Source of the DNA: Octopus sinensis
Lineage: Eukaryota
Direction of reading: 5' to 3'
NCBI RefSeq assembly: GCF_006345805.1
Contig: NC_043025.1
Coordinates: forward strand, 14,074,001 to 14,138,000
Length of the DNA stretch: 64,000 bases
Shown: positions 33,218-64,000 of the stretch, piece by piece
Layout of the letters: each line of letters opens with the position of its first letter
Position numbering within the stretch: the first letter of the stretch is position 1
Notes under the pieces: model-generated
The model's database searches: none
What the model was told of the DNA's origin: nothing
Seen by the model: the letters and a program-made list of their open reading frames with translations, nothing else
Made by a program: the position numbers and the translations under genes

Positions 33218-35822
33218 CCAACCACTCCAGAGAGTGGACTGGTTGCTTTTAATGTGGCTCGATCACTTGCAAGGTCTGTTCTATCATGGCTTCTACAGCT
33301 GGATGCCCTTCCTAATGCCAACCACTCCAGAGAGTGGACTGGTTGCTTTTAATGTGGCTCGATCACTTGCAAGGTCTGTTCTATCATGGCTTCTACAGCT
33401 GGATGCCCTTCCTAATGCCAACCACTCCAGAGAGTGGACTGGTTGCTTTTAATGTGGCTCGATCACTTGCAAGGTCTGTTCTATCATGGCTTCTACAGCT
33501 GGATGCCCTTCCTAATGCCAACCACTCCAGAGAGTGGACTGGTTGCTTTTAATGTGGCTCGATCACTTGCAAGGTCTGTTCTATCATGGCTTCTACAGCT
33601 GGATGCCCTTCCTAATGCCAACCACTCCAGAGAGTGGACTGGTTGCTTTTAATGTGGCTCGATCACTTGCAAGGTCTGTTCTATCATGGCTTCTACAGCT
33701 GGATGCCCTTCCTAATGCCAACCACTCCAGAGAGTGGACTGGTTGCTTTTAATGTGGCTCGATCACTTGCAAGGTCTGTTCTATCATGGCTTCTACAGCT
33801 GGATGCCCTTCCTAATGCCACCACTCCAGAGAGTGGACTGGTTGCTTTTAATGTGGCTCGATCACTTGCAAGGTCTGTTCTATCATGGCTTCTACAGCTG
33901 GATGCCCTTCCTAATGCCAACCACTCCAGAGAGTGGACTGGTTGCTTTTATGTGGCTCGATCACTTGCAAGGTCTGTTCTATCATGGCTTCTACAGCTGG
34001 ATGCCCTTCCTAATGCCAACCACTCCAGAGAGTGGACTGGTTGCTTTTAATGTGGCTCGATCACTTGCAAGGTCTGTTCTATCATGGCTTCTACAGCTGG
34101 ATGCCCTTCCTAATGCCAACCACTCCAGAGAGTGGACTGGTTGCTTTTAATGTGGCTCGATCACTTGCAAGGTCTGTTCTATCATGGCTTCTACAGCTGG
34201 ATGCCCTTCCTAATGCCAACCACTCCAGAGAGTGGACTGGTTGCTTTTAATGTGGCTCGATCACTTGCAAGGTCTGTTCTATCATGGCTTCTACAGCTGG
34301 ATGCCCTTCCTAATGCCAACCACTCCAGAGAGTGGACTGGTTGCTTTTAATGTGGCTCGATCACTTGCAAGGTCTGTTCTATCATGGCTTCTACAGCTGG
34401 ATGCCCTTCCTAATGCCAACCACTCCAGAGAGTGGACTGGTTGCTTTTAATGTGGCTCGATCACTTGCAAGGTCTGTTCTATCATGGCTTCTACAGCTGG
34501 ATGCCCTTCCTAATGCCAACCACTCCAGAGAGTGGACTGGTTGCTTTTAATGTGGCTCGATCACTTGCAAGGTCTGTTCTATCATGGCTTCTACAGCTGG
34601 ATGCCCTTCCTAATGCCAACCACTCCAGAGAGTGGACTGGTTGCTTTTAATGTGGCTCGATCACTTGCAAGGTCTGTTCTATCATGGCTTCTACAGCTGG
34701 ATGCCCTTCCTAATGCCAACCACTCCAGAGAGTGGACTGGTTGCTTTTAATGTGGCTCGATCACTTGCAAGGTCTGTTCTATCATGGCTTCTACAGCTGG
34801 ATGCCCTTCCTAATGCCAACCACTCCAGAGAGTGGACTGGTTGCTTTTAATGTGGCTCGATCACTTGCAAGGTCTGTTCTATCATGGCTTCTACAGCTGA
34901 TGCCCTTCCTAATGCCAACCACTCCAGAGAGTGGACTGGTTGCTTTTAATGTGGCTCGATCACTTGCAAGGTCTGTTCTATCATGGCTTCTACAGCTGGA
35001 TGCCCTTCCTAATGCCAACCACTCCAGAGAGTGGACTGGTTGCTTTTAATGTGGCTCGATCACTTGCAAGGTCTGTTCTATCATGGCTTCTACAGCTGGA
35101 TGCCCTTCCTAATGCCAACCACTCCAGAGAGTGGACTGGTTGCTTTTAATGTGGCTCGATCACTTGCAAGGTCTGTTCTATCATGGCTTCTACAGCTGGA
35201 TGCCCTTCCTAATGCCAACCACTCAGAGAGTGGACTGGTTGCTTTTAATGTGGCTCGATCACTTGCAAGGTCTGTTCTATCATGGCTTCTACAGCTGGAT
35301 GCCCTTCCTAATGCCAACCACTCCAGAGAGTGGACTGGTTGCTTTTAATGTGGCTCGATCACTTGCAAGGTCTGTTCTATCATGGCTTCTACAGCTGGAT
35401 GCCCTTCCTAATGCCAACCACTCCAGAGAGTGGACTGGTTGCTTTTAATGTGGCTCGATCACTTGCAAGGTCTGTTCTATCATGGCTTCTACAGCTGGAT
35501 GCCCTTCCTAATGCCAACCACTCCAGAGAGTGGACTGGTTGCTTTTAATGTGGCTCGATCACTTGCAAGGTCTGTTCTATCATGGCTTCTACAGCTGGAT
35601 GCCCTTCCTAATGCCAACCACTCCAGAGAGTGACTGGTTGCTTTTATGTGGCTCGATCACTTGCAAGGTCTGTTCTATCATGGCTTCTACAGCTGGATGC
35701 CCTTCCTAATGCCAACCACTCCAGAGAGTGGACTGGTTGCTTTTAATGTGGCTCGATCACTTGCAAGGTCTGTTCTATCATGGCTTCTACAGCTGGATGC
35801 CCTTCCTAATGCCAACCACTCT
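33218..35822. repeat. Near-perfect 100-bp tandem array (about 26 copies) derived from a family B element
   Basis: Identical ORFs recur every 100 bp; the unit contains ctacagctggatgcccttcctaatgccaaccactcc. Confidence 0.97.
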
Positions 35823-37176
35823 ACAGAGAGGGTTAGGTGCTTTTTATGAGGCACCAGCACTTGGAAGGTCTGTTCTGCTATGGTTTCTACAGAGTGTACT
35901 GGGTGCTTTTTACATGGCACTGGCACCCACGAGCCTGCAAGATTAAGAACTGAGATGGAGAGGGATGCAGGGGGGATATGCCTGTATGCAAGGATGACCA
36001 TGTCATCCTTGACATGCTTGTTTTTACTTACATTTTTCCATGCCAGCATGGGTTAATAATCCACCCACCCATCCATCCATGTGAAAGGAGACATTGGGGC
36101 CAGCCACAGTCCTCTGGTTCATCAGTTCCTGTCCAACCCATACTCCTCCCATTTTTTGCTTTCTCTAGTTTCCTTACCCAATCCTGCTTCCCCATAACTC
36201 CCTCCCACTCTCTCACCCAGATTTGGTTGACTTTTCGTATCACGAACTGAGACTCCCCTTCTAATTTCCCTGATTCAGCCCTGTTTTTCCCAGCCAAAGA
36301 GAAGTATACATCACTGCCAAACACAGTTCACCTAGCTGTAAATAGGTACGCCGTGGAGATACAGAGGCCCACAGGTGTGCTCAGGCCACTTGGCTGTAAA
36401 TGGACACCATGCTACTCTTCTATCCGCTGCATTTTTCATTTCAATTATCCCAAGATGCACCATTCTATCAACCTAAACAGCTTCCTCTAGTATATAGTGA
36501 CCTCTGACCTTGAGGTCACTATAGTAAGATGACCTCTGACCTCTAGACCATTTTCATATGTCCTAGGCGTGACTTTAAACTGCATCCGATAGTGGGGGTC
36601 TGATTCAAGAATTCCAGGGTTTTGAGTAGGGTGGACCCACCCAATAGCCAGTATTGTTCCCAGGCCTACTCAGGTCCAGGGTAGTAGCACTTGTCAGGGT
36701 CCAAAGTCTACTCTATTTTTTGGGGGGGTGGAGTTGATGTAAGTGGTGATGTCAGGTGAGGTAAGGGGGAAGTGTTGCAGAGGCAGGGGTGGTCAGGTGG
36801 ATGGGGGTAGGTGAGGTGCCGGGATAGATGGATGGGTGGTGGGGAGTGCTTGGTAGACAAGGGTAGATGGAGGCATCGGGGAGGGGGAGATGGTGGTAGT
36901 GTCAGATGGACAGGGGGGATGGGGGTGTTTGGTAGACAGGGGTGGGGGAAGATGTCGGATAGCCAAGGGAACAGCTGGAGGAGAAGCGCTAAGGTAGAAG
37001 GCATGGTAGGGAGGTGGGGCTAGTTGTCTTTGATGATCATGATGGTGATGATGATGAATCAAAATGCTAAGTCAGGGGTGGGTGGCATGGGCAGAAAGCA
37101 GAAACAACAACAACTACTACTACTACTACAATAGTAAGAAGCTGCTGTGGCTCGTTAAAAGCGACAGAGTTTCTCG

Positions 37177-37730
37177 TTAACATATTATGCAGTGATCGAC
37201 TTTTTCTGCAATTGACGGACTTTCTGCTTTGCCAGTGGCTGGTGGTACCGGTGCTGGATTGGGGGCCGGCGTAGCTGCTGTGGTTGTTGGTGGTGTCGAT
37301 GGGGGTGGAGTCGCCGCGGGGACGCCAGGGGACGGAGCAGTGTCGGGAGTTAAAGACGATGGAGCGTCACCGATTTCCACCGCGTCCATAACTATGCTGT
37401 CCTCGTCCATCTGCTGCTCGGGGTCGCCCTCGGCGTTGTCTATGGAGAGCAAAGCATCCTCGCCCTCCGTCATGCAGTATTTCAGCTCAGACATTTCCGT
37501 GGCCATTTCTGCAAGCTCGATTTTTTCCTCGACGCAAGCGCCCTCTCCCCGTTTCTGGGATTCTGCCACATCTCCATCACCGCCATGGGCCCTCTCCCCT
37601 TTTTCGTCTCCCTCTGATGGTACCCCGGCATCATCACCATTATTCTTATTCGGGTCTGCATAACCATCTTCCTCTGCATTCATCATCATCATCGGACCAT
37701 GACAGCATTCTCCGATCTCGGTTCCAATCT
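37177..37730 (-). CDS. Acidic/Pro-rich terminal coding exon ending in CaaX (CIIC*); putative alternative last exon of CLIP1
   Basis: Long T-rich tract plus GTCAG|AG acceptor. The phase-1 frame is open for 184 codons including the stop (EIGTEIGECCHGP...KVDHCIIC*). It is a GC-rich, non-repetitive island. No separate upstream exons for it were found between 37731 and 47270. Confidence 0.65.
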
Positions 37731-38844
37731 CTGACAAAAAATACAAAAAAGAAACAAAAAAAACAAAAACAACAGAATTACAAAGGTTCCACATGAGAGA
37801 TCGTCAAACAATTTGGCTCAAACGTCCCACACCCACCTTCCATGTAAAACCCAACCATGCCCACCCCCAAAATTAATCACTTCTATTTTTCTCCCTTCAG
37901 CCAGATACTGGTTTCAAATTTCGACACAAGGCCAGCAACTTTGTGAGAGGGCAGAAGTTGATTACATCGACCCCCAGTATTACAACTGGTACCTATTTTG
38001 CTCTTTACTCTTCTATTTGTTTCAGCCGTTTGACTGTGGCCATGCTGGAGCACCGCCTTTAGTCGAGCACATCGACCCCCAGGACTTATTCTTTGTAAGC
38101 CCAGTACTTATTCTATCGGTCTCTTCTGCCGATCTGCTAAGTGATGGGGACGTAAACATACCAGCATCGGTTGTCAAGTGATGCTAGAGGAACAAACACA
38201 CACACACAAACATACACACACACACACATATATATACATATATATATATACATATATATATGACGGGCTTCTTTCAGTTTCCGTCTACCAAATCCACTCA
38301 CAAGGCTTTGGTCGGCCCGAGGCTATAGCAGAAGACACTTGCCCAAGGTGCCACACAGTGGGACTGAACCCAGAACCATGTGGTTGGTAAGCAAGCTACT
38401 TACCACACAGCCACTCCTGTGTCATATATATATATATATATATATATATATGACATCATCAATTAGCATCTGTTTTCCATGCTGGCATGGGTTGACAGAA
38501 GTTGGCCAGCCGGCAAGATGCCCAAACTCCAATTGTGTGTTGTGGCATGGTTTCCATGGCTAGGTGCCCTTTCTAACACCAACCACTTTACAGAGAGTGT
38601 ATTGGGTGCTTTTCACATGCCACTGGCATCAGTGTGATTGTGCAGCATCAGCACCCGGAGAGGACACGCCTGAATGCACGGACAACAGCGATTTCATTGA
38701 GCTCGACACATCTCCTCAAGTACAGCAAATCGCCACAACTCTTGGCCCCTCGACATGGGCCCCAATGTACAAAAGAGAAAAAATTCATCTTCAGACAATC
38801 CATAGACCCCGGGACAAGTTGATATCTATGGAATATCTATTTCT

Positions 38845-39070
38845 TTATTACCCACAAGGGGCTAAACATAGAGGGGACAAACAAGGACAGACATAGGTAT
38901 TAAGTCGATTACATCGACCCCAGTGCATAACTGGTACTTTAATTTATCGACCCCGAAAGGATGAAAGGCAAAGTCGACCTCGGCGGAATTTGAACTCAGA
39001 ACGTAATGGCAGACGAAATACCGCTAAGCCTTTCGCCCGGCGTGCTAACGGTTCTGCCAGCTCGCCGCCT
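38845..39070 (-). mobile_element. SINE family D, young copy with 16-bp TSD
   Basis: TATCTATGGAATATCT at 38823-38838 and 39073-39088; close to the 26222 copy. Confidence 0.85.
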
Positions 39071-39279
39071 TTTATCTATGGAATATCTGTGTGGTGATCG
39101 GGCCCTGTTTCTCAATCAGTATTGAACCTGTGACCCCGGGGTTTAAAAGAACCTCAACAACTAAAAAGAAAATAAGACACGGATCAACTTGGTTTCATCA
39201 TCAAAATAAATTCAACTTTATTTTAAAAAAAAGCAAAGGAAACGGTTTCAACCAATTTGTTATAGCGCAAGGGTGGTGT

Positions 39280-39860
39280 GGTGTATGCTGCAGTGTATGT
39301 TGTAGTATACTGCAGTGTAGGTCGTAATATGTTGTAGTGTACGTCGTAGTATGCTGTGGTGTACGTTGTAGTATGTTGTGGTATATGTCATAGTATGTGA
39401 TGTAGGCCATAGTATGATGTGGTGTAGGTTGTAGTATGCTATGGTGTATGTTGTAGTATGCTGCAGTGTAGGTCGTAATATGCTGTGGTGTAGGTTGTAA
39501 TATGTTGTAGTGTACGTCGTAGTATGCTGTGGTCTATGTCATAGTATGTGATGTAGGCCATAGTATGATGTAGTGTAGGTTGTAGTATGCTATAGTGTGC
39601 TGTCCAGTGGTGGTAGTGGTGTTGGTGTGGTACAGCTGCATGGTGCAGTGTGGTGCCTGTTGTAGTATATTGCAGTGTTGACTAATGTGGTGTGTGTTGT
39701 AGTAGGCTGTAGTATGTTGTAGTGTATGCTGCGGTAGGTGCTGCAGTATGTTGTGGCGTTGTCTGATGCGGAGTGTGTTATGGTATGTGTTACAGTATGT
39801 TGTGGTGGTGGAGTCATCTAGTGTGGTGTATGTTGTGGCATGTGTTGTAGTATTGTGGTG
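39280..39860. repeat. Degenerate GTAGTAT/GTGGTGT-type simple repeat
   Basis: Recurring tgtagtatgctg / tgttgtagtgt. Confidence 0.8.
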
Positions 39861-40859
39861 GTGTCCAATATGGTTGTGCTGTTTTCTGTACAGAATTAAA
39901 ACTATTATTATTATTATTCTTACAATTTTGTTATTTACAAAAGTAGCAGAGAAGGAAAAAGATAAGAAAAAACAGGGGGAGAGAGAGAGAGAGAGAGAGA
40001 GATACAGAGGAAAGAGAGAGGGGGAACTGAGAGAAAGAGGAGAGGGGGAACTGAGAGAGAGAGGGGATAGTGATATATATATATATATAGAGAGAGAAAG
40101 ATAAATAGAGGAGGATAGACAGAGAGGAAGAGAGAGTAAGGAAAGAAAGGCCTTAAAAACAGATCATCAAATCCAGACCAATTTTGAAAAATGGCAGGGA
40201 TGGGGGGGGGGGCAAGGGGTGATGATGAAGGGGTGTGTGGTGGGAGGGGAGCGGGAAGGGGTGGGCGTCACAAAAACAGCCCCATGGCCCTTGACTGTAA
40301 GGAAACATATGAAAGGGCTTCTGTGTGTGTGTGTGTGTGTGTGTGTGGTGCAGTGGTGGAGAGTGGAGGTGGTGGATGCGATTGGAGGGGGGGAGTGGTG
40401 AAGAGGGTTAGTAGACACAGAGGTGGTGGCAGCAGTGAGAGGAGAGGAGAGAGAGCGACAGAAGTGGTGGTGATGGTTGAGGCGGTGGTGGCAACGGCGG
40501 TAGTAGTGGAGGTAGTAGCAGTGGGGGTTCATTGGAAATTTTAGGGAGACGAGAACGGTTCAAATGGAATGTTGTTATTTCGTTGGGATCCAACGGCTGG
40601 ACACGGGGCCAAAAGGGGAAAGGCTGGCAGCCCCCCCCCCATGTTGGTCTGGCGCTCCACCCTGCCACCATGGTCCAAATCTCAGCTGGGTCACACATGC
40701 TACAGACTGGACACATAGGGGCCACACTGCTCCCTTATTTCTTCTCTCTGGCAGGACTCTAATGTAGTGTCACCCATGTGGTGTTGTCTGATGCGCTGTG
40801 GTGGGGTTGAGTAAAGGCTACAGGTTGACGAGATGGGCAAACCCTAGGTAAAAACTGCT

Positions 40860-41340
40860 AGAGCAGTGTAAGTGATATAGCAAAGAGAGAGGTGCTGTAC
40901 TGCAGCAGTGGTAAACTAGTGTAACGGCAGTGTTTGAATAGTGCAGTAACAGCGGTAAGGAAGTGTTAGAAGAGTGCTGTGTCAGCAGTACAGCAGTGCT
41001 TTAGCAGTGGCATTGCAGTGTTAGAGGAGCACTATGGCAGTGGAAAAGCAGAAGGAGCAGTGTTTTAGCAGTGGCAGTGTTAGAGGAGTGCTATGCCAGT
41101 GGAAAAGCAGTGGAATTGCAGTGTTAGAAGAGTGCTACATCAGTGTTAGAGGTGTATTTTACGAGTGGCATAGCAGTGCTAGGGGTATGCTATGCTGGTG
41201 ACATGGCAGTGCTTTAACAGTGTTTTATGAGTATCGTAGCAGTGCTTTAATGGTGTTATTGCAGTGTTAGAAAAGTGCTATGCCAGTGGTACGGCAGTGT
41301 TAACGGAGTGTGATCCTAACAGAGCTACATCAGTGTCTGA
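40860..41340. repeat. Degenerate minisatellite (gcagtgttag core)
   Basis: Recurring gcagtg(t/c)t(t)ag. Confidence 0.65.
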
Positions 41341-41699
41341 GGCTTGTCGTGCAAGTGGCGGGTGACATACACCAGAGTGTCGTATCAGTGGTGGTGGGCA
41401 GACCAACTGGACAGGCCAGGTTAAACCCGGTTGGGGGGGTGAGGGGGGGCAGCGGAGGTGATGAGGGAGAGAAAGACCAGGACCATTAGGGCTGGGGGTC
41501 AGGTCAACGACCACCAAAGAAGGGAAACAGGAGGGGACAACTTACTATTAACGAGAAGAATTACTGAGGTGTTATTAAGAGGAGATATATGATAATCCAT
41601 CGAAGGGATTAACTGGTGTTATTTTGGGATTTGTCTGTCTATATTCTCTTCTATGCATCTGTCTACTTATATGGTTTCCAGGGGCTGGATTAGTAGCAA

Positions 41700-42760
41700 A
41701 GCAGAGATAATGATTGTCATTAGTTGAAAAATAAGCTAATTACAACTTAATCCTAGTCATGAGAACTGGTAGGAGATTAGGGATAATCCCTGACAGAGCT
41801 AGCAGCAGATTAAGTTAATGCACGGGTAGAGCTGGATAGGGTTACATTAAGCCATGGTATGGAGTTAATCGGGAGTAGGGACCAAGCTAATTCCTGGCAT
41901 GGAGCTGGCTAGGATTAGAGTTAATCCAGGATATAGAGCGAGCAGGCGACCAAGTTGATCCACAACATGGGTTAAGGTAATCCATAACATGGAGCTAGCA
42001 AGGGATTATGTTGATCTGCAATATGAAGCTGATTATGGATCAAGTTAATCCATTATAGGACAGGAGGATTATGTTAATCCTGATATGGAGCTAGCAGGGA
42101 TTTTAAGTTAAACCACGAGATTGAGTTGATATGAAACTGATTGTGGATCAAGTTAATCCATGACATGGGACTGGCAGGAGGATTAAGTTAATCCACAATA
42201 ATGGAATTGGCAAGAGGATAAAGTTAATCCACATTAATGGAGTTGGCAGGCAATTAAGTTAATCCAAAATATGGAAACAAACAGGGATTAATTCATGACA
42301 TGGAATTTGCAAGGGATTAAGTTAATCCCTGATATGGAATTAAGTTAATGTATGACATGGTACTGGCTGGAGATTACATTAATCCCTGATATGGAGCAAG
42401 CAGGCGATTAAGTTAAACCAGTGTGGAGTTAAAAGGGGATTAATTTGATCCACAGCATGAAACTGGTTGGGGTTATGCTAATCCAAGACATTGAGCTAAT
42501 AGGATTAAGTTAATCCACACTATAGAGTTAGCAATGGATGAAAATGTTGTATGATATGAAGCTGGGGTCAAATTAATTGATGACATGGAAATGGTAGGGG
42601 ATTAAGTTAATCCACAATAATGGGATTAGCAGGGAATTGATTTCATGCCCAATGATGGCATTAGCAAGGGATGAAGTTAATCCACAATAATGGATTTAGG
42701 AGGGAATTAAGTCAATCCCTGATATGGAATTAAAAGAGGATTATGATAATCCATGATGTG
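41700..42760. repeat. Degenerate minisatellite (about 30-35 bp)
   Basis: Recurring ggattaagttaatcca..acatgga. Confidence 0.8.
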
Positions 42761-43179
42761 GAGTTGGCTGGAAGGCAGAAGGAAGCAAATGTCCTGTTGC
42801 CCCTAAATATGAGGACAGGTTACATAACTTTGGCCCTGTCCACTGGATAGAAGGGACCAAGCTATGTAGGGGGTCATATTATGGAGGAACACAGGGAACA
42901 GCGGCCAAGTTGTAAAGAAGAGGGTATTAGGGGTTGTTCCAGTTACCCCCCAAAGAAAGAAAGGTGACTTACCTTAACCCTTACCAACTGGACAGACTAG
43001 GTCAAACCAGGAGGGTGGTGGTGGTGATGGTGGTGGCGAGGAGGAAGATCAGGGCCTTTAGGGGCCGGTAGTCCAACTACTACCAAAGTATGGAGATAAG
43101 GGACAACTTACTTTTATCTGTGCATTCTTGAAGATAAAAATTTAGGGAAAAAACCCTAATACGTATATATAATATTGGG

Positions 43180-43647
43180 GAGAGAGAGAGAGTAGAGAAA
43201 GAGCTTGACATAAACAGGGGCCGAAGGAGAGTTAAGGGGAAATGACAGAAGAGAGAGAGAGAGAGAGTAAAAGAGAGTAAGTCTCTCTTTTTCTCCCTCT
43301 ATATAGGCAGAGAGGGGTGAAGAGAGAGAGAGAGAAACAAATAGTGAGATAGAGAGATAGGGAGATAGAAAGAAATAGATAGATGGACATAAACGAAAAG
43401 ACAGACAGACAGATAGACCGAGAGATAGATAGGTAGGTGGATGGATGGTTAGATAGAGAGAGAGAGAAGGAGAGATAGATAGAGAGAGAGAAGGAGAGAT
43501 AGATAGATAGAGGGAGAGATAGATAGATAGAGAGAGAGAGAGGAGAGATAGATAGGTAGGTAGATAGATGGATGGATGGTTAGATAGAGAGAGAGAGAAG
43601 GAGAGATAGATAGAGAGAGAGAAGGAGAGATAGATAGATAGAGGGAG

Positions 43648-43678
<31 letters not shown>

Positions 43679-44160
43679 GAGAGAGGAGAGATAGATAGGT
43701 AGGTAGATAGATGGATGGATGGTTAGATAGAGAGAGAGAGAAGGAGAGATAGATAGAGAGAGAGAAGGAGAGATAGATAGATAGAGGGAGAGATAGATAG
43801 ATAGGTAGATGGATGGATAGATAGATAGATAGAGAGAGAAGGATAGATAGATAGATAGAGGGAGAGATAGATAGATAGGTAGATGGATGGATAGATAGAT
43901 AGATAGAGAGAGAGAGAAGGATAGATAGATAGAGAAGGAGAGATAGATAGATAAAGAGAGAGAGAGAAGGAGAGATAGACAGATAGATAGAGAGAGAGGA
44001 GAGATAGATAGATAGATAGAGAGAGAGAGGAGAGATAGATAGATAGAGAGAGAGGAGAGATAGATAGATAAAGAGAGAGAGAGAAGGAGAGATAGACAGA
44101 CAAACAGATAGAGACACAGACAGATAAATAAACAGAGAGATAGATAGATGAAGACAGATC
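43180..44160. repeat. (GA)n/(GATA)n compound microsatellite
   Basis: Direct inspection. Confidence 0.95.
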
Positions 44161-44408
44161 AATAATAGACTTCAAGAGTAAAAATGTCTCAAATAGGTTT
44201 TTTTTGTTGTTAAACCAGAAAAAAAAGAAGAAAAATCCGTCTGATTCAGGCTCAGGAAACTGTTTGTGGTTTTTTGTTTTTTGTTTTTCTCTTCTTTTTA
44301 TTAAAATCATTTCACAAAGCAGCAAATAACAGTGGCGGCAGCAACAACTGCAGCAGTAAAGGTAGCAGCAGCAGCAGCGGCAGCAGCCGAAAGTCAATAC
44401 ATATATAT

Positions 44409-44446
<38 letters not shown>

Positions 44447-44450
<4 letters not shown>

Positions 44451-45755
44451 ATATATTTAGAGAAAGGGAGAAAGCGGCCATCGTTAACTTGTAGGTTCTC
44501 TATGACGATGTTATGGTGGTGGTGGTCATGGGTGGTGATGGTCGTGGTAGGTGACAGTGGTGGCGATAATGGTGGTGGTGGAGGTGGTGGTAGTAGTGTC
44601 GGCAAGTAACGATGGCCATGGGCTAAGAAAGGGGGGGGGACAAGGAGATCATCGTCGTCGTCATCGTCATCATCATCATCATCATCATTGTCGTCGTCAT
44701 TGTTATCGTCGTCCGCGGAAGTGAAGTCAACAAAACGCCAACTGCCCGACCGACCGACCGACCGACCGACCGACCGACCGTCCGCGACCACGCGTCGTCG
44801 GTCATCGGCGTTGGCGGGTGCAAGTTAGTCGTAGTGGCGGTGGTGGTGCTGCAGCTATGGGGCTGGTGGTGGTGGTGCACAGATGTGGTGTGCAACTGGG
44901 TTTTTTTCAAAAAAAAAAAAATTTTTTTTTTCTCGCAACAAAAAGTAAATAGGGGGTGAGGTGTCCTGACCATCACCCCTGCAGAGGGCCCTCAAAGCAC
45001 AGCAACGATATTAGCACAGGAATATATGGCAACAATGTGCAGGCACTGATGTATATATACATATATACACATATATATATATAATATGCATCTATATATA
45101 TATATATATTATATATATATATATATATGTGTATATATTTAGAGAAAGGGAGATAGCGGCCATCGTTAACTTGTAGGTTCTCTATGACGATGTTATGGTG
45201 GTGGTGGTCATGGGTGGTGATGGTCGTGGTAGGTGACAGTGGTGGCGATAATGGTGGTGGTGGAGGTGGTGGTAGTAGTGTCGGCAAGTAACGATGGCCA
45301 TGGGCTAAGAAAGGGGGGGGGGACAAGGAGATCATCGTCGTCGTCATCGTCATCATCATCATCATCATCATTGTCGTCGTCATTGTTATCGTCGTCCGCG
45401 GCAGTGAAGTCAACAAAACGCCAACTGCCCGACCGACCGACCGTCCGCGACCACGCGTCGTCGGTCATCGGCGTTGGCGGGTGCAAGTTAGTCGTAGTGG
45501 CGGTGGTGGTGCTGCAGCTATGGGGCTGGTGGTGGTGGTGCACAGATGTGGTGTGCAACTGGGTTTTTTTCAAAAAAAAAAAAAAAATTTTTTTTTCTCG
45601 CAACAAAAAGTAAATAGGGGGTGAGGTGTCCTGACCATCACCCCTGCAGAGGGCCCTCAAAGCACAGCAACGATATTAGCACAGGAATATATGGCAACAA
45701 TGTGCAGGCACTGATGTATATATACATATATACACATATATATATATAATATGCA

Positions 45756-45790
<35 letters not shown>
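44447..45790. repeat. 682-bp tandem duplication
   Basis: gtgtatatatttagagaaaggg starts at 44447 and 45129; the copies differ mainly in microsatellite lengths. Confidence 0.92.
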
Positions 45791-45791
<1 letters not shown>

Positions 45792-47270
45792 CACACATAC
45801 AGTGTGAAAGGTCGGCAGGTAGAGAGGGTGGGTGTGTGTCCAACCTGTATAACCACACCCACCTGTGGGCATGGCAAAGGGCGCAGCAACGAGTCTAGGG
45901 ATTGGTTCATTGGTTGCAGTAGTAGTAGTAGGAGGAGGAAGAGGAGGAGCATTGATATTGGAGCTGGAGGCAATATTATTATCATATCATTACGTCTGTG
46001 AATTGCAGAGAGGGAGGGAGGGAGGGAGGCAGAAAAGAGAGAGAGAGGGGGGGGGGAAGTGGCTGTTGTAGTAAACAATGCACAAACTGGGAGGAGGAGG
46101 AGCAAGAATTCAAAATATATATAAAACGCCTCCGCATGACGAAAAGTGAAGTGGGAGGAGTTAAGTGTGTTCTTTGGAGGAGGAGGTGGCGACTGTGTTG
46201 GAGGAGGAGGAATGAACGAACGAAAAAAAAATAATTTAACAAGATCAGAGCTGATACAGCCAACAGAGTTAATTAAGTTTTGTGTTTTTATATCGGAGTT
46301 AACGAAGCTGTGATGCAGCAACATTTTAAAGACTGTTGGATGGGTGGGGACTTGGAGGAGGAGCCGATGTGGCAATAGGATTGGGAGGGGCAGAGAGACG
46401 GGGGGGGGGTGAGAAATGAAGGGGAAGGATTGGGCGGGGACAAGGAATGATGAGGAGAATGACAACTAGGGGTGGGGCAGGGTAGGAAGAGGGAGATAAA
46501 AGGAGGAGCTAAAAATGGCAACAAGGGTGGGAAGGGCATGGAGGAGGTGTTGGACGAGAACTCTAAGGGAAGAAAGAGGTGTAAGGAAGAGAGGGCCCTG
46601 CGTGTGGGGGAGGGTGGGAAGGAGGGAGAGACAGGACAGAGAGGGTGTGAGAATCAAAGGGGAGAAAGGAAGCCATTTAAAGAAGGGGGCGTGGCATGGG
46701 ATGTCAGGAATGAAGAGAGAAGCATTATGATAGGGGGAGAGGAAAGAGTAGAAGAGTAAAAAAATAAAAAAGTGGGAGGGGAAAAAGGGATGGAGGGGGT
46801 AGTGGTGAGGATTAAAGGAAAGAAGTGGGGGGGAAAGACATAGGAATGAACTGGTGAAGGGGTGGAGTTGGTAAGGAGAGGAGGATGAGAAGCTAAAGAA
46901 GCAACAGAATAGGGGGCTGGGAAGAAGGGGGCTGGGATCTAACAGGAAAAAGGGGGCAGGACAGGGGAGAGGGGAAGATATATATATGTATATCTTCCCC
47001 CTTATATAAAGTGTGGGAGGGAAGTGTCATCTCATTCTCGTCTATTTTACAGGGATTTCGAAACCCTTGGTGGGTGGGGTGGGGAGACATTCGGCAATAT
47101 GCAGAGGGGGGGAGGGGGAGATGGAGGATGGGAGGTGCAGGAGTGGAACAAGGCAGGGGGCGGGGTTGTGTGTGTGTGTGGGGGGGAAAGAGGAAACAGG
47201 GACGGAATGGAGGATGGGGTGCGGATGGGGGGTCAGGGAGGAATGAAGGGAAATAATTTTTTTTGACGGC

Positions 47271-47317
47271 TCAAAACGTTTCGTCCACATCACAGTCGGA
47301 GGTCTGGTGTCCAAAAA
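47271..47317 (-). CDS. CLIP1: CLIP1 canonical last coding exon
   Basis: GCTTTGCAG|TT; [15 protein letters not shown]. It completes knuckle 2 (C-x2-C-x4-H-x4-C). Not in the ORF track. Confidence 0.93.
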
Positions 47318-47385
47318 CTGCAAAGCAAACAAACAAAAGCGGTTAGATGTGTGTAGCAAAGACAAGATGAAGCAGAGGCAAGTGC

Positions 47386-47418
<33 letters not shown>

Positions 47419-50400
47419 GTAGTAATAGTAATAGTAATAATAGTAATAAAGATGACAGTCTAGTCTAGTGAGGTGGTCTGCCCTCTGGCATGTCCTGTAA
47501 ACCTTCTTCAAAATGTTCCATGCTACCTGGAGGGGTTCGGACCCTCTCCTGTTGCTGTTAAGTAGATTGGGACTTTGGCTACCAGGACTGACAAGATGAA
47601 ACAGACACATATCTTTATATATAAAAGTAAGGTTGTGTTTCTGTCTCCTACGATTTAGATTCCTAACTACTCCCACATTTTGCGGTGCAGTTTAACCAAA
47701 ACCGGGTATCTTATAGTCGTGATTCATATCGAGCCCTTCTGGGTATTAGTGCGCGTCTACGATTAAAAAAAAAAATTACCATCAATTTTTCCCATTTTTA
47801 ATGCATTTTTGGCATATATAAGGGAAGTAACTCTCTAAAAATTTATTATTAAATCTCAGAACGTAAAAAGCTACAGTAACACCCCCCTTTGTGGTTAGCC
47901 ATATTGAGATGGCTATTATACTTTACATCTCTAAAAATGCTTATATAGTTATGTCCCTTACAAACCCGAGCATTAGTGCTAAATAATAATAATAATAATA
48001 ATAGGAGGAGGAGACCCCCTTCGGTCATGAATGGCCATAGGATTGCACCTAGAAAGTTACCCTCCGAGGCACCCTCTCTATGCCACCAATGTTATCCAAG
48101 GGAAAGGGCAAAGGGGCCGATACAGCTTGGCACCAGTGATGTCGCAATTCATTTCTACAGATGAGTGGACTGGAGCAACGTGAAATAAAGTGTCTTGCTC
48201 AAGAACACAACACTCAGCCCAGTCCAGGAATTGAACTCATTACCTCATGATGTGCCTTCAATAATAATAATAATAATAATAAGATGGGCTACAGCAAATA
48301 TTCTGCTCAATACCACAGATTTGCTTGTCAGTTGTTTGACCATAACCAGTTGAGCATGTCCCTTAGTGGCTGACGATATGTGCATCTCTGATCATGAGCA
48401 GAAGTAGTGGGGGAGCATCATAGCCATGTGTTGAGAGGAGTTCTTGGGGGTTTGGATAATTCACCTCTGGAAACATGGGTGGTTTTTTCAACATCCCTAA
48501 ACAAACCTTATTCAGGGCTCTTTTGAGCAGGATGGGCTACTCAACCTGAAGAAAATTCTAACTGGGCCCCACCTGCAAGGTCATGTGCTGTTTATCTTGA
48601 TATGGGATCACCATGTCGCGCACATATGGTTGTGATACATGTGCCTGGTGTACCCTTATCAGACGGGTAGTCATGATGGGTATACTGGGCTTCATTTTAC
48701 CCCAGTGTCACTTTGATGGTATGAACTGCTCTCTCACTCAATAATAATAATCCCTTCTATTATAGGCACAAGGCCTGATATTTCAGGGTTGGAGATAAGT
48801 TAATTACATCGACCCCAGTACTCAACTGGGACTCATTTTATCAACCCCGATGAAAAGCAAAGTTGACCTTGGCAGATTTCGAACTCAGAACGTCAAGCAA
48901 TTTGGCTGAGGGGCTAACCATCCTACCAGCTCACTGTCTTAAATAATAATAAATAAGAATAGGGGTTTCAAATTTTGCCACAAGGCCAGCAATTTCGGGG
49001 CAAAAGGGTAAGGCGTAGGAGTGGCTGTGTGGTAAGTAGCTTGCTTACCAACCACATGGTTCTGGGTTCAGTCCCACTGTATGGCACCTTGGGCAAGTGT
49101 CTTCTGCTATAGCCCCGGGCCGACCAATGCCTTGTGAGTGGATTTGGTAGACGGAAACTGAAAGAAGCCCGTCGTATATATGTATATATGTGTGTGTGTG
49201 TGTGTATGTTTGTGTGTCTGTGTTTGTCCCCCTAGCATTGCTTGACAACCGTCCCCGTTACTTAGCGGTTCGGCAAAAAAGACCGATAGAATAAGTACTG
49301 GGCTTACAAAAGAATAAGTCCCGGGGTCGAGTTGCTCGATTAAAGGCGGTGCTCCAGCATGGCCACAGTCAAATGACTGAAACAAGTAAAAGAGAGTTGA
49401 TTACATTGACCCCCCCATGCTCCTATATATTAAATTCAGCCTAGGAACAGACCCCTAACCTAACCCACGGGGGTCTATCCCGACCCAAATCTGCCACACC
49501 CTGACCAATACCTGGGAAGACGTAACTCAAACAGTTGCCTCGCCTCCTGGCCAAACAGAAAGGCCCGGTGTTCTGTCACCATGCAACCCCTCCTCCCTTA
49601 GCCCTTAACTCCATGCCCCCTAAAACATCAAGCAATCATCACTATAAACATGATTATAAAAGAGCAGAAGGTCAGATGTGATAAAAAAAAAAAAGGTTGA
49701 AGGTCAACAAGACCGAAAGGTCAAAGGTTGTTTAGAGAATGACCTTGGGCAGACAACATTGCTGGTGGTGACAGTGGTAGAGGTAGTAGTAGTTGCCGTG
49801 GTGACGATGGCTGTAGTGGTGTAGGTGGTAGTGACACGGTTGGTGGCATTGTGGTGGTGGTGGTGGTTGTGCTGTTGGTGGTTGTAGTGAGAGTAGTGGT
49901 TGTGGTGGTGGTGGTGGTTAAGAGATGCCCCACCCTCACTGAAATGTGGACAGCACACTCAGAAGAAAGACTAACATATACGTACAGACATGCAGAGAGA
50001 GATGCACACACACACACATACGCTCATGCACACAGGCAGACACATACACACACAACACAGGTAGACATGTACACAAAAGGTACACATGTAATTATATACA
50101 CACACACATACACACACAACACAGGTAGACATGTACACAAAAGGTACACATGTAAATATTTACACACACACAAACACAAGAAATGTACACCAACATACAT
50201 GTACACAGACACACACACACACACAATAAAGGAGACACGTACACACACATTGAAACAAGTATATATCTACGCATGTACATATGTAACCACATACGCACAT
50301 GTACAAAGACAGACACACACACACAATCAAAGAAACATGAACACAACCACACAGGTACATATATAACCACACATGTTCACACACACACAAACACACACCC

Positions 50401-58800: not shown

Positions 58801-61800
58801 TCAGTGGGCCCCCGTCGAAGAGAAACGGCTTTGGAATCAAAGAGCTGAACAGATGGAACCAGGGTAGAGTTGTCAGAGTGGTGGAGGTGGTGGTGTTGGA
58901 AGAAAAGTGGTAGTGTTCGTGGTGGTGGTGTTGGTGTTGGCGTGGCGAGAACGACCTACCTTCACAGATTTCGCAGTAGGCTCTCTCCTGTTTGGGAGTG
59001 CCGTGGTACTGGGTGCAGGGCGGACTGTCTGACATGGTCTGCTGTGGACAGTCCTCGGTGTCGTGTTTGTCAAATTCTTCACAGATATCACAGAAAAGTC
59101 GAAGTGTGACAAGCGGATCTTTCCTGGAAAAACAACAACAACAACAACAATTATTATCATTTCTTTTATTGGCCTCAAGGGCCTACATGCAAACAACATG
59201 AAATGACAAAACAGGACAATACAAAGGGTTTTAAACCGTGTGGCACATAAAAGGCACCATTCGAATGTGATCGTTACCAGCATCGCCTTACTGGCACTCG
59301 AGCCCTGTGCTAGTAGGGTGCTAAGAGCACCATCCGAGCATAATCGTTGCCAGAGCAGCTAACTGGCCTCTGTGCCAGTGGCACGTAAAAGGCACCATTC
59401 GAGCATGGTCGTTACCAGCATCGCCTTACTGGCACCTGTGCCGGTGGAATGTGTAAAAAGATTCGAGCAAGGTCGTTGCCAGTACTGCCTGACTGGCCCC
59501 CGTGCTGGTGGCATGTAAAAATCACCCACTACACTCTTGGAGTGGTTGGCGTTAGGAAGGGCATCCAGCTGTAGAAACTCTGCCAGATCAAGATTGGAGC
59601 CTGGTGCAGCCATCTGGTTTGCCAGCCCTCAGTCAAATCGTCCTTCAGCTGGTCAGATCCTGTCAAATCCTCCAACCCATGCCAGCATGGAAAAACAGAC
59701 GTTAAATGATGATGGCATACAAATGTAAAGCCGAAGTGGTTACCTTTTGTCATTGTGGGCCTCGTCATCTTTCACGTCACCATTCACAAGGGCATCCAAA
59801 CGAGACTTGAGGTTCTCGTTCTGCATGTGAAGATAGACAATCTCAGACTTCAGCAATTCAATCTGGAAAACAAGACGAGATGTTGTGATGCTCATGCCTT
59901 TACGCCACAATAATAGCAGTTGTTACTCTTTAGACTTGGGGCATCCCTAATAGACACCCTTATGAGCATAAGAGTTTCCACGTGTGGCCATCCTGTTTTT
60001 TGAACCACATTAAGTAATGTTCTATCATTTTTTCTATATACAGAGAATTCTACATCACCATCCTAACAACTATCTGTCCCATTTTTGTTCACATACATCT
60101 GCAACACTATCCTCACAACACCCCACAACACTAAAACGCTATCCTCACAACACCCCAAACACTATCCTCACAACTCCCCACAACACTAAAACGCTATCCT
60201 CACAACATCCCACCACACCACCCCACAACACTAAAACACTATCCTCACAACATCCTACCACACCACCCCACAACACTAAAAACGCTATCCTCACAACATC
60301 CCACCACACCACCCCACAACACTAAAACACTATCCTCACAACGTCCCACAACACTAAAACGCTATCCTCACAACATCCCACAACACTAAAACGCTATCCT
60401 CACAACATCCCACAACACTAAAACGCTATCCTCACAACATCCCACAACACTAAAACGCTATCCTCACAACATCCCACCACACCACCCCACAACACTAAAA
60501 CGCTATCCTCACAACACCCCAAACACTATCCTCACAACATCCCACCACACCACCCCACAACACTAAAACGCTATCCTCACAACATCCCACAACACCATCC
60601 TAACAACACATTTATATTTAGTATCACAGTATTGACCAGTCACCAGATGCTGTTATACACCACTGTCACAATGCACTTCCAAGTTTGTCTTGATTGTGTC
60701 ATTCTTTTCTATCTTGACTCAAACTGCTTAACTAAATCGTCTTCTCATTGGTGTTGAGGCCTTATATTTTCTTATTTCTGTGTCCTATATAAGGTCACAG
60801 ATCGTGTCGTATAGCCAGCTGGAGACAATGTCTCCTGGGGCTAAATTACAGCAACATTCGTCTTAAACAAGGACTGCCATGTTATGTTGGCAAACAATCT
60901 TTACTACAAACTACTGTTGCTGAATATCTCATCTGACATTTAAAAATAGTTATTTTCTAAGCTTTACACTACACTCTACTATGATCTGAATAGAATATCC
61001 CTCTGCAACACTGTAAATAAATTCCCTTCTGGGAATGACCGAGTTTAAAAGTCTGCTGGATCTCACTCTTAAGAGAATCTTACATTGCTTATAAAATCTA
61101 TTTCTGGATGGACTCATTTTAAACTCTGTTGGACTTTTGGATTTTACTCATAGGATATTGGAATATTACACATATATACCATTCTGCCTATAAAACGGAT
61201 TTCCAACTTCAATACCCATACATATCTTGCATCTATTTTCTTTCCTCCACCTCACTCTCTATTTTGTATCATAATGAAACTCTAACTATGACTTAACATT
61301 CCTCTTACACCGTCTCCGATGAAGGGATATAATTAATAAATATCTTAGAAACAGCTGTAAAACCTTCTATCTATAAATGCTCTAATATCTACACAGCCTT
61401 GGTTTTTTATGTTATTACACAAAAAATTCTTATATATATATTTATGTATATTTGCAAATGGATGCATGGCATTCAATCAAATAATAATATAAATCATATA
61501 TATATATATATATATCAATATATAGAAAAATACAAACTGGGACAAGAACGTAAAACATTTAGAAGACGATACAAAAAACACGGACGGGACATTCAAAGCC
61601 TTCAATCTTCAGTCAAGAACCGGATCATCCTAGCAATTTCGGCTGATTAATTTATATATATATATATATACACACACATACATATATGAGTATAGGATGT
61701 CACCAACAGGAAACAACATAAAATACGAAAACGAATGTATTTGATACGCAAGCAACTAGAGACAAATGGAAGACAGGACAAGTAACATAAAGAACGACCC

Positions 61801-63252
61801 TTCATCAGTCGTCGGCTGTTTTGTCTACTCCTCATTTCGAGCATTCAACGACAATGCTCGAAATGAGAAGTAGATAGATTCTTTATATATATATATATGT
61901 ATATGCATGTCAGTAGCACAGAGAAGTACTTTTCACTGCTGTGCCCAGTCCATGTGGCTGTAACTAGGGACCACCTGCAACAACGTAATCATAAAACTCA
62001 CCTCCATTACACTTTCTTCATTTTCTTTCTTCAGTTGTGAAACAGCACTGTCTGTTGATAGAGAACAAAAGCAGAGGGGTCAGTTCGGTCGCATACCCTT
62101 CCCCATCTCTATTTTCAGTGGGGTTGAGGGGGAACTCGAGGGAGATTTGGCTACTATTTTTCACAAGTTCAGAGACAACACAATTCTATATTTCTGTGAT
62201 GAGGAACTTATTCTGCGAGGGATTGCTGAAAAGTTGCTGGTTTTTAAGGACATCACGAAAGGCCTGGTTGGAGGCACAATCTTCCAAGTTCTTTTATAGG
62301 GTTTAGAAAAACTGAAGGACCGCTGCAATAAGTGTGTGAATCTACGCGACTCTACTGCATTAACCAACATCTTGATCTACTACACTATGCCTGTCACGGG
62401 TCACAACAGAGAGAATATTTGGTTTTGTTTTTCTTAATGTTTGTTGGTTATGAATTACTGACAAGGTTGTAGGACATTGCAATCAGCAAATTAGCCATAG
62501 AATAATCCTTTCTACTACAAACACAAAACCTGAAGTTTGGGGGAGGGGGCTAGTTGATCCCATCAACCCCCCAGGGTTTGACTGGTACTATTTTATCAAC
62601 CTGGAAAGGACTGTTGTCCCATCTAGGGGGGGACAACACACTTACATTACAGAATCCAGGGAATTAGCCTTATGAGCCTAGAGCTTGGTAAGGCCCTTGA
62701 GGCATTGGCTTTAGTGGTCAAGATATTCAACTCAAGATCCTAAGATTGGGGTTTCAATTCCTGGACTGAGCAACTGATTGTGTTCTTGAGCAAAACATTT
62801 CACTTCACGTTGCTCCAGTCCAAATGAAAAAACCAGGGACAGACCAGGGTCCCATCCAGGGAGGATAATATAACCCGATAAACTGGCCCTTATCAGCTTG
62901 TGGCACAGCAAGGACCTTTGATTCCATCATATATCCACAGCCTACCAGATACCCTCGCTCTAATATGTACCCTCTCCTATCACATACACACCCTTACTAT
63001 TAGGTACCCAAAGGTAAGAGGGGGGGGGGGCTGTTTAAAGCTGTACCATTCTAAAGACAGAGACTTACCATCCTCAGAGGTATCAGCATCACCATTGGCT
63101 AACAAGTGGCCAGCTGGGGCATTTTTCTGAGCTAATTGCTCCTCGAGGGCCTTGACCTTCTCCAGAAGTTCCTTGTTTTCTTTCGATAGAGATTCTGTTA
63201 AAGAACTGGAGTTTTCTTTTAACCGGCTGTTTTCTTTCTGAAGTTGTTTCAT
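47271..63252 (-). CDS. CLIP1: CLIP-170 (CAP-Gly domain-containing linker protein 1 / restin) orthologue, last five coding exons, 5' part outside window: join(63252-63069,62051-62002,59862-59744,59123-58960,47317-47271)
   Basis: Phase-consistent splicing gives a coiled coil followed by [19 protein letters not shown]...[24 protein letters not shown]. This is the diagnostic CLIP-170 C-terminus: two CCHC zinc knuckles plus a terminal ETF motif. Confidence 0.93.
47612..47975 (+). mobile_element. Non-autonomous Helitron-like element, 3' terminus degraded
   Basis: A|TCtttatatataaaag start; homologous to 12495-12828. Confidence 0.65.
49013..49395 (+). mobile_element. SINE family A, near full length
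   Basis: Matches the family A consensus from head to tail. Confidence 0.85.
49960..50430. repeat. Degenerate (CA)n-rich region
   Basis: Direct inspection. Confidence 0.85.
53322..53630. repeat. 24-bp minisatellite (about 13 copies)
   Basis: Unit aatagcatagcaattagccctaac; ORF reads (SPNNSIAI)n. Confidence 0.95.
53846..54174. repeat. 173-bp-period tandem duplication
   Basis: atgcaggggattttt at 53846 and 54019, both ending tattattattgtatatataaca. Confidence 0.9.
56519..56600 (+). ncRNA. Minimal type I hammerhead ribozyme motif
   Basis: ttccc-CTGATGA(56524-30)-[agg...cct stem II]-GAAA(56584-87)-tggcca-TA-gggaa: intact core, 5-bp stem I, palindromic stem III. Confidence 0.7.
57600..58617. repeat. 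Tandem array of the same 125-bp unit as 8225-9992, opposite orientation (about 8 copies)
   Basis: Unit is the reverse complement of the nrf-6 intron array unit. Confidence 0.95.
58960..59123 (-). CDS. CLIP1: CLIP1 zinc-knuckle exon
   Basis: TTTTCCAG|G; [55 protein letters not shown]; donor G|GTAGGT, phase 1. Confidence 0.95.
59230..59715 (-). mobile_element. Family B element with internal repeats in the CLIP1 intron preceding the zinc-knuckle exon
   Basis: gagtggttggcgttaggaagggcatccagctgtagaaac...catgccagcatggaaaaacagacgttaaatgatgatg. Confidence 0.75.
59744..59862 (-). CDS. CLIP1: CLIP1 exon
   Basis: TTTTCCAG|ATT; [39 protein letters not shown]; donor AG|GTAACC, phase 2. Confidence 0.88.
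60100..60600. repeat. Minisatellite (about 30 bp, cccacaacactaaaacgctatcctcacaacat)
   Basis: Direct inspection. Confidence 0.9.
60640..61390. mobile_element. Highly degraded retroelement-like remnant ending in a decayed hammerhead motif
   Basis: Stop-ridden, non-repetitive segment followed by CCGATGA...GAAAcagctgTA; a Penelope-like origin is inferred only. Confidence 0.3.
62002..62051 (-). CDS. CLIP1: CLIP1 short coiled-coil exon (50 bp)
   Basis: TATCAACAG|AC; [17 protein letters not shown]; donor |GTGAGT. It bridges the phase 1 donor to the phase 0 acceptor of the next exon. Confidence 0.82.
62259..62347 (+). mobile_element. mariner/Tc1 transposase C-terminal fragment
   Basis: [14 protein letters not shown] / (frameshift) [16 protein letters not shown] resembles the mariner terminus W...Q..EFY..GI.KL..RW.KC. 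Confidence 0.55.
63069..63252 (-). CDS. CLIP1: CLIP1 coiled-coil exon
   Basis: TTTGCAG|ATG; [43 protein letters not shown]...DTSED; donor G|GTAAGT, phase 1. Confidence 0.88.
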
Positions 63253-64000
63253 CTGCAAAGAACCAAAAAAAACCATAAGAAAATTATAAACCAAAAAAAC
63301 AAATAAACAGGAGCAGACGGGTGATCCCTTATGAAGATCTTAACGTTTCCAGGGGACCCAGGCATGGCTGTGTGGTAAGAAGCTTGCTTCCCAGTGACAC
63401 GGTTCTGGGTTCAGTTCCACAGCATGGCACCTTGGGCAAGGGTCTTCTACTATAGCCTCAGGCTAACCGAAGCCTTGTGAGTGGACTTGGTAGATGGAAA
63501 CCGAAAGAAGCCCATCATATAGCAAGTGTCTTCTACTAAACCCTTGCGAGTGGACTTGGTAGATGGAAACTGAAAGAAGCCCATCATATATATCGTCATC
63601 ATTGCTTGATGTCCGCTTTCCCTGCTGGCATGAGCTGGACGGTTTGACATGGAACTGGCCAGCAAAGAGCTGTCCAGACTCCAACCGTCTGTTGGGGCAG
63701 GGTTTCTGTGACTGGATGCCCTTCCTTTTAAGATCTTTGTAATGTGTGTGTGTGTGTGGGGGGGATCTCCCACCATCACTTGAAAACCAGTGTTGGTGTG
63801 TTTACATCCCTCTAACTTAGTGGTTCAGCATAAGTGACCAATAGAATAAGTACCAGGTTTTAAAACCAAAGGAGTACTGGGGTCAATTTATTTGACCAAT
63901 GTCCTTGAAGGTGGTGCCCCAGCATGGCCATAGTCAAATGACTAAAACAAATACTCTTTTGTTCTTTTACTTGTTTCAGTTATTTGACTGTGGCCATACT

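Follow-up and report, generated by a model that had tools for sequence, protein, structure and literature searches.

CLIP-170, the product of CLIP1, carries two CCHC zinc knuckles and an ETF tail, and the present analysis concerns a stretch of the Octopus sinensis genome of 64,000 nucleotides (nt) (NC_043025.1, positions 14,074,001 to 14,138,000; hereafter the window) in which an exon-like unit downstream of the CLIP1 zinc-knuckle exon may supply this protein with an alternative C-terminus that ends in a CaaX prenylation box. The closest functional analogue of a CLIP without its second knuckle is CLIP-115 (CLIP2), which has a CAP-Gly head and a coiled coil and is without C-terminal knuckles or ETF; it differs in being a separate gene and not an isoform, and in having no lipid-modification signal. 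CLIPR-59 (CLIP3), a lipid-raft- and trans-Golgi-associated protein whose C-terminal cysteines are palmitoylated, sets a precedent, being a CAP-Gly protein that binds microtubules and is kept at membranes by lipid modification of its C-terminus. The choice of a last exon sets the prenylation box in lamin A versus C, the CDC42 isoforms, ZAP-L versus ZAP-S, OAS1 p46 versus p42, and RPGR, and to our knowledge none of these switches involves a microtubule plus-end tracking protein. Yeast Ras1 and Ras2 are validated CaaX substrates that end in CIIC or CIIS. In CLIP-170, the second metal-binding motif is the site used by p150Glued and LIS1, and the first is that used by the CLIP-170 head (Lansbergen 2004, PMC2172020); CLIP-115 has been named as a CLIP-170-related protein (PMC2172020), and CLIPR-59 has been associated with lipid rafts (PMC2797139).

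The candidate exon lies on the same strand and at the same locus as CLIP1, and its putative product would be shared with CLIP-170 up to the first half of knuckle 2, beyond which the candidate tail is without the His ligand, is without the ETF motif and fails the Pfam knuckle profile PF16641 (14.6 bits). CLIPR-59 differs in that its palmitate is on a Cys pair and not on a CaaX box, and in being a different gene with ankyrin repeats and no long coiled coil; Pfam and profile searches found no similarity between CLIPR-59 and the candidate tail. The logic of the known terminal-exon switches would be the same here, at a junction that is putative. The end of the tail agrees with the yeast Ras type in having C, then an aliphatic pair, and Cys as X, whereas Ras proteins have an adjacent palmitoylated Cys or a polybasic run and the candidate tail has neither. 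In a full-text search for CLIP-170 together with CaaX, no title or abstract among the matches listed described a natural CLIP-170 isoform of this kind.

An exon-like unit downstream of the CLIP1 zinc-knuckle exon

The unit extends from 37730 to 37177 on the minus strand and consists of a very strong splice acceptor and a 184-codon frame with a conserved CIIC stop. The 3' splice site (37731..37775, minus strand) consists of about 40 nt of U-rich polypyrimidine tract with CAG at its end (...tgtttcttttttgtattttttgtcag); the intron closes with ...ttttttgtcag at 37731 and the exon opens with AGATTGG at 37730. Over positions -40 to -4 this acceptor is 84% pyrimidine and 81% T, compared with 68% and 43% at the acceptor of the canonical CLIP1 last exon, and the approximately 70 nt leading into it have just two mismatches with Octopus vulgaris. 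The candidate terminal coding exon (37177..37730, minus strand) has a first codon completed by the G of the upstream exon, and its 184 codons end with those of the CaaX box (TGC ATA ATA TGT, C-I-I-C; 37180..37191), which TAA follows at 37179-37177. The whole frame, from stop to stop, covers 208 codons (37177..37794, minus strand) and ranks fifth in length among such frames in the window, the four longer ones being CT-rich low-complexity sequence. The encoded tail of 184 amino acids (aa) has an isoelectric point (pI) of 4.05, with 40 Asp and Glu residues against 9 Lys and Arg, 21 Pro and 12 Thr, and its acidic part comes first, followed by a part rich in Pro, Thr and Ala. Strict CaaX-type ends are found at 25 of the 4921 open reading frame (ORF) ends in the window (about 0.5%), and are mostly one repeated CLLL. 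A preliminary description of this stretch had reported a strong acceptor, a frame ending KVDHCIIC* and about 180 acidic, Pro/Thr-rich residues; the acceptor and the frame are exact to the base, and the length and pI given above agree with the third statement.

The CLIP1 gene is represented in the window by an open frame containing an upstream coiled-coil exon (...EEQLAQKN...; 62980..63294, minus strand, exon limits approximate), by the penultimate or zinc-knuckle exon (58960..59123, minus strand), which encodes knuckle 1 and the first half of knuckle 2 (YCEICE), and by the canonical last coding exon of 47 nt (47271..47317, minus strand; acceptor ...gctttgcag), where the O. vulgaris CLIP1 model ends. 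The knuckle exon closes with ...TAC TGC GAA ATC TGT GAA G|gtaggt, a phase-1 donor. The candidate exon is on the CLIP1 strand, downstream of this donor, phase-compatible with it and open to a stop: when 58960 is joined to 37730 by script, the frame continues unbroken to the stop, giving the junction peptide AYCEICEEIGTEIGECCHGP..., a product that reads CEICE-EIGTEIGECCHGP...CIIC, and the C-terminus ...SIAEKVDHCIIC*. The phase-1 match between donor and acceptor that the preliminary description had noted was thus reproduced, and such a match has a prior of 1 in 3. The canonical terminal exon, which the preliminary description had not placed, sits between the donor at 58960 and the candidate acceptor; since it intervenes at 47317-47271, the candidate would be a distal exon, 9.5 kb past the normal stop.

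The start of the candidate exon resembles that of the canonical last exon. In register, 15 of the first 29 nt are identical, and a resemblance of at least 15/29 is reached by 0.2% of the 29-mers in the window and by 0.1% of post-AG sites; the BLOSUM62 score of the candidate start against the canonical last exon at the peptide level is 14, in the top 0.17%. The 13 junction-proximal codons, (E)IGTEIGECCHGP (37692..37730, minus strand), hold a Cys that aligns in register with the final Cys of knuckle 2; beyond it the similarity to the canonical exon ends. Exon duplication is not shown as the source of the likeness, as sensitive blastn around both acceptors (best E of 0.53) added nothing to the 29-nt in-register resemblance. 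An imperfect 12-nt tandem copy, GAGATTGGAACC and GAGATCGGAGAA (EIGT/EIGE), makes up the first 24 nt of the candidate exon (37695-37729), and because of these copies the in-register position of the Cys may stem from a 12-nt tandem duplication. The junction-proximal codons precede the first Met run, (ATG)4; this run at the start of the tail (37678-37695) is an (ATG)n microsatellite whose length differs among species, reading PMMMM in the window, TMM in O. vulgaris and MM in Octopus bimaculoides.

The leading interpretation of these features, held tentatively, is that the candidate exon serves octopus CLIP1 as a distal alternative last exon, in whose use the canonical 47-nt coding exon at 47317 would be skipped and the donor at 58960 joined to 37730.

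Conservation among octopuses and coding evidence

The tail matches exactly two proteins, both standalone and both from Octopus: CAI9744336.1 (A0AA36FM62) of O. vulgaris, a "hypothetical predicted protein" of 213 aa that is 94% identical, and A0A0L8FQL2 of O. bimaculoides, of 173 aa, which starts MMITAEED and is 75-80% identical. The ORF itself is therefore already public as an uncharacterised protein. Both relatives share the C-terminal end ...KAESPSIAEKVDHCIIC with the window protein, and the common C-terminus of all three species is ...TGKAESPSIAEKVDHCIIC, with identity over the final 19 residues. Among 1.84 billion representative proteins, a profile search gave no matches to the tail, and no homologue was found outside Octopus; Pfam gave nothing below E = 0.13, a scan of the JGI metagenomes gave no true match, and exact-product look-ups of A0A0L8FQL2, of the 205-aa unspliced ORF and of the 171-aa Met-start ORF found none of them on record. 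AlphaFold2 predicts the tail to be disordered and without helices or strands, at a predicted local distance difference test (pLDDT) score of 45.

The window and the O. vulgaris locus (OX597843.1, L001) are collinear, their aligned columns being about 96-98% identical, which places the window with a species close to O. vulgaris and of the same group. The candidate exon has 18 substitutions relative to O. vulgaris, 8.5 synonymous and 9.5 non-synonymous, giving a ratio of non-synonymous to synonymous rates (dN/dS) of 0.34 (binomial p = 0.038), against 1.5 and 1.0 for the two remaining sense frames. The 12-kb alignment with O. vulgaris contains 93 short indels, just 32% of them multiples of three; about 4 indels are expected per 552 nt and two are seen in the candidate exon, of 6 and 3 nt, while frame-breaking indels, of which about 2.8 are expected, are absent. 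The O. bimaculoides protein aligns end to end with in-frame indels only, its last 45 residues being almost unchanged, and, judging from the indel rate of the flanks, several to many frame-breaking indels would be expected in this species under neutrality, against none seen. In both species the frame is open and CIIC identical, as the preliminary description had suggested should be looked for. A neutral rate of 0.0036 per site per million years (My) per lineage (PMC13282606) and Octopus split times of 13-34 My (PMC13282606; PMC10700109) imply a pairwise neutral distance of 0.10-0.24 substitutions per site to O. bimaculoides. Retention of the open frame in O. bimaculoides under neutrality has a P of 0.18-0.31 at distances of 0.09-0.13; two or fewer changes in the last 45 residues have a P of about 0.007 at a uniform neutral rate of 0.09; and in simulations at higher distances the observed identity and open frame are no longer unremarkable. 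Codon periodicity is strong, with G at 48% of first positions. The candidate frame is, on these comparisons, probably protein-coding.

Competing explanations and the putative CLIP1 isoform

Several observations weigh against the candidate exon being a last exon of CLIP1. The canonical last exon has a good acceptor, which would need bypassing together with its poly(A) site, whichever that is, and within 1.4 kb past the CIIC stop there is no AATAAA or ATTAAA, only variants (AATAGA at 36717, for example). The in-register likeness to the canonical exon was recognised post hoc. The hybrid knuckle created by the join, in which the His ligand becomes Thr, scores 14.6 bits on the CLIP1_ZNF profile (PF16641, pattern C-x2-C-x4-H-x4-C, family cut-off 25 bits) and covers profile positions 1-9 only, compared with 36.4 bits for knuckle 1, 40.9 bits for canonical knuckle 2, and 13.8 and 20.0 bits for control joins; a hybrid zinc knuckle at the join is rejected, as its score is under the cut-off and no better than the controls. 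The preliminary description was right that Gly and Cys stay aligned and that His becomes Thr, but the hybrid fails the profile. The candidate exon is 96.7% identical to O. vulgaris, equal to its flanks (96-98%), and a frame on the antisense strand has an equally low dN/dS of 0.27; since the antisense frame mirrors third positions, the substitution test cannot choose the strand. In simulation at a distance of 0.09, 80% identity with an open frame is unremarkable for O. bimaculoides (P of no stop 0.31). Both public models assign the candidate exon to a separate gene, and the O. vulgaris annotation contains no CLIP1 isoform with this exon; its longest CLIP1 product stops at the canonical stop, a point that counts because a tail-bearing isoform would be longer. 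The absence of a fusion isoform from the protein index carries little weight, because searches with C-terminal exons of CLIP1 brought up fish and environmental fragments only and not a single octopus CLIP1.

A credible though doubtful alternative is a small gene of its own, restricted to Octopus and situated just downstream of CLIP1, which would encode a free, disordered, acidic, farnesylated protein. A short 5' exon in or just after the CLIP1 3' region (donor 45863), or an intron in the 5' untranslated region (UTR), would be spliced to 37730, and translation would yield 187 aa (MPT-EIGTE...) from a conserved gccATGccc or 171 aa from the Met run. Two annotations, CAI9744336.1 and A0A0L8FQL2, model it as a gene of its own, the former with the candidate as exon 2 of two. 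The counterpart of exon 1 of CAI9744336.1 in the window (45863..45938, minus strand), 1.4 kb past the CLIP1 stop, has a good phase-1 donor (ACAG|gtgggt) that is in phase with the candidate; every species seen retains the ATG at 45872 and two or more of the run's Met codons; the possible weak CLIP1 poly(A) signals at 47046 and 46292 would leave space for a new transcription unit; and the coding evidence is the same as for a CLIP1 exon. However, the ATG with which the O. vulgaris model starts (MLLLQ) is out of frame in the window because of a 1-nt indel, and the part of the exon-1 counterpart that remains in frame is gccATGcccacaG only (gccATGcccaca-G, with the ATG at 45872-45870); most of the "coding" part of exon 1 is therefore not conserved between genomes only about 3.5% apart. 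Such models are a frequent by-product of ab initio gene finders meeting an orphan terminal exon. The protein would have no domain, homologue or predicted structure, its lipid anchor having nothing recognisable attached to it, and both the phase match and the in-register likeness to CLIP1 would be left unexplained. The O. vulgaris annotation was built from ab initio predictors, from PASA/TransDecoder and from the O. bimaculoides proteome in alignment, and drew on Iso-Seq and RNA-seq with PASA isoform updates (PMC10700109); because O. bimaculoides proteins served as evidence in this pipeline, the two models are not fully independent, and the two-exon model may be without RNA support. Solely at the level of gene models, the exon is joined to an exon of a separate gene, one of the outcomes that the preliminary description had named as refuting its proposal. 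Either way, both public "hypothetical protein" models need revision, since the O. vulgaris first exon fails in the sister genome. Use as a CLIP1 exon does not exclude use in a separate gene, since both donors could be served by one acceptor. If the gene is separate, it would be a genus-restricted, disordered, farnesylated orphan of modest interest, chiefly with regard to the origin of new genes.

It is rather improbable that the unit is a non-coding exon or no exon at all, whether as a spliced CLIP1 3' UTR (45863^37730), read-through or a long non-coding RNA, with the frame and CIIC incidental and kept by conservation at the nucleotide level. The flank-level identity to O. vulgaris, an ORF length that is no outlier in the window, the retention in O. 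bimaculoides if the neutral distance is about 0.09, a substitution test that rests on 18 changes, the lack of a homologue found beyond the genus, and the low pLDDT without secondary structure are all consistent with such an origin, as is the tendency of the O. vulgaris annotation to call spurious ORFs here: in the interval from the CLIP1 stop to exon 1 of CAI9744336.1 it has a Pro/Ser/Leu-rich "gene" of 134 aa (L001 9220-9624, about 46.7-46.3 kb of the window), which looks like a spurious ORF in low-complexity sequence. Among the sense frames, however, the low dN/dS is confined to the candidate frame, frame-breaking indels are missing where about 2.8 are expected in O. vulgaris and several times more in O. 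bimaculoides, and the near-invariance of the last 45 residues, the first-position G periodicity and the chance rarity of a CaaX-type end all argue for coding. Further explanations are jointly still less probable. Translation of the unspliced frame from the ATG at 37794, which would yield a 205-aa protein whose first 21 residues (MWNLCNSVVFVFFVSFLYFLS) are hydrophobic and signal- or anchor-like, finds some support in the presence of ATG and frame in both the window and O. vulgaris, yet it is very improbable, given that the hydrophobic stretch is a translated poly-T/G splice tract, that a secretory signal is incompatible with cytosolic CaaX modification, and that neither public model uses this start. 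The same very low probability attaches to coding on the plus strand (a Gly-, Ala-, Val- and Ser-rich ORF of 155 codons, 37196..37663): its dN/dS is as low as that of the minus frame, the two mirroring each other's third positions, but a mirrored signal is expected of any true minus-strand coding frame, and this ORF is shorter, of low complexity and without splice or start context, in a region where O. vulgaris has no plus-strand gene called.

If the candidate exon serves as a last exon of CLIP1, the product would retain the CAP-Gly head, the coiled coil and zinc knuckle 1, would lose the His ligand and second half of knuckle 2 together with the ETF tail, which jointly form the p150Glued/LIS1 site, and would gain a disordered, acidic, Pro/Thr-rich spacer of about 170 residues ending in a CaaX box. 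A disordered spacer with a lipid anchor would make more functional sense as such a tail than as a free protein. The box itself has Cys at -4, aliphatic residues at -3 and -2 and a position directly at the C-terminus (TGC ATA ATA TGT TAA, 37191-37177), and CIIC is among the tetrapeptides for which affinities of farnesyltransferase and geranylgeranyltransferase 1 have been measured (PMC1175975), in agreement with the fit to the CaaX consensus claimed in the preliminary description. A linker of about 11 flexible, small or hydrophilic residues is called for before the CaaX Cys (PMC1175975), and the 11 residues found there, ESPSIAEKVDH, are small or hydrophilic and lie in the region that AlphaFold2 predicts as disordered. 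The 20 residues before the box (TGKAESPSIAEKVDH...) have a negative or neutral net charge and no Cys, and neither a polybasic run nor a palmitoylatable Cys was found near it as a second membrane signal; farnesyl alone would therefore give weak, transient membrane binding at most, so that of the membrane anchor suggested earlier the conserved CaaX box stands but a firm attachment is doubtful. Farnesylation, clipping and methylation of the box would place a weak lipid anchor on a plus-end protein, functionally like CLIPR-59. Because p150Glued and LIS1 use the second metal-binding motif (PMC2172020), the putative isoform would lose dynactin and LIS1 binding, as the preliminary description had implied; however, its attribution of autoinhibitory CAP-Gly binding to knuckle 2 is at odds with the use of the first motif by the head of CLIP-170 (PMC2172020). 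As knuckle 1, the site of the head, would be kept, the isoform might still fold back and head-to-tail inhibition may persist, which makes the term "non-autoinhibited" used in the preliminary description unsafe.

It is on balance unlikely, though conceivable from the sequence, that an octopus-specific, prenylated CLIP1 isoform tracks plus ends and ties growing microtubule ends to membranes. Should the CLIP1 junction exist, it would give the first CLIP-170 isoform with a prenylation box and a natural experiment on the role of the knuckle-2/ETF module. One splice choice would then trade the recruitment of dynactin and LIS1 for attachment to membranes, in an animal whose neurons are very large and whose transport is long-range, and the idea of a "cytoplasmic linker" would be realised within one polypeptide. 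Such an isoform, if real, would be a variation on known kinds, restricted to Octopus as far as is visible.

The 3' region of CLIP1 and its repeats

From the canonical last exon down to an AATAAA at 39222, the minus strand is a G-poor, CT-rich domain (39200..47500), which could be a long CLIP1 3' UTR or plain low complexity. The first AATAAA beyond the CLIP1 stop is at 44302, and the one at 39222 is another; the weaker variants AATAGA (47046) and TATAAA (46292) precede the first. The median 3' UTR of octopus is 350-380 nt (PMC9699675). Given this short median and the weak signals at 47046 and 46292, the skewed composition was rejected as proof of an 8-kb CLIP1 3' UTR and the domain is not treated as UTR that has been mapped, which leaves the canonical exon without a fixed 3' end. 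Within the G-poor domain lie the four longest ORFs of the window, together with about 800 nt of (AGAT)n at 43347-44149 and a 22-nt array at 39283-39598. The stretch from 43.4 to 40.4 kb has 98.3% identity to O. vulgaris, above that of the candidate exon.

A 100-bp satellite of 27 copies, 98% alike, occupies 33174-35892 and begins about 1.3 kb downstream of the CIIC stop on the minus strand; its unit carries a minus-strand ATTAAA, and the same array is present in O. vulgaris. Two related tandem arrays in opposite orientation, with a unit of about 125 bp and higher-order periods of 253 and 374 bp, are found at 8301-10004 and 57586-58619, the latter within a CLIP1 intron and only some 340 nt beyond the knuckle-exon donor. 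A tRNA-like repeat of the short interspersed element (SINE) type is present at 38850-39090 and at about 20 other sites (for example 26215-26447 and 6418-6625); ARAGORN and Rfam called no RNA gene in the window, and none of the copies of this repeat. A second family, of about 400 bp, is also dispersed, and both families occur in the window and at the O. vulgaris locus. Two segments of the window, 47610-47980 and 44450-45100, are missing from the O. vulgaris locus, and the second is probably a local duplication of about 650 bp, because it repeats neighbouring sequence (a PTLLPPPP...SPTTT frame at 45284 and at 44602).

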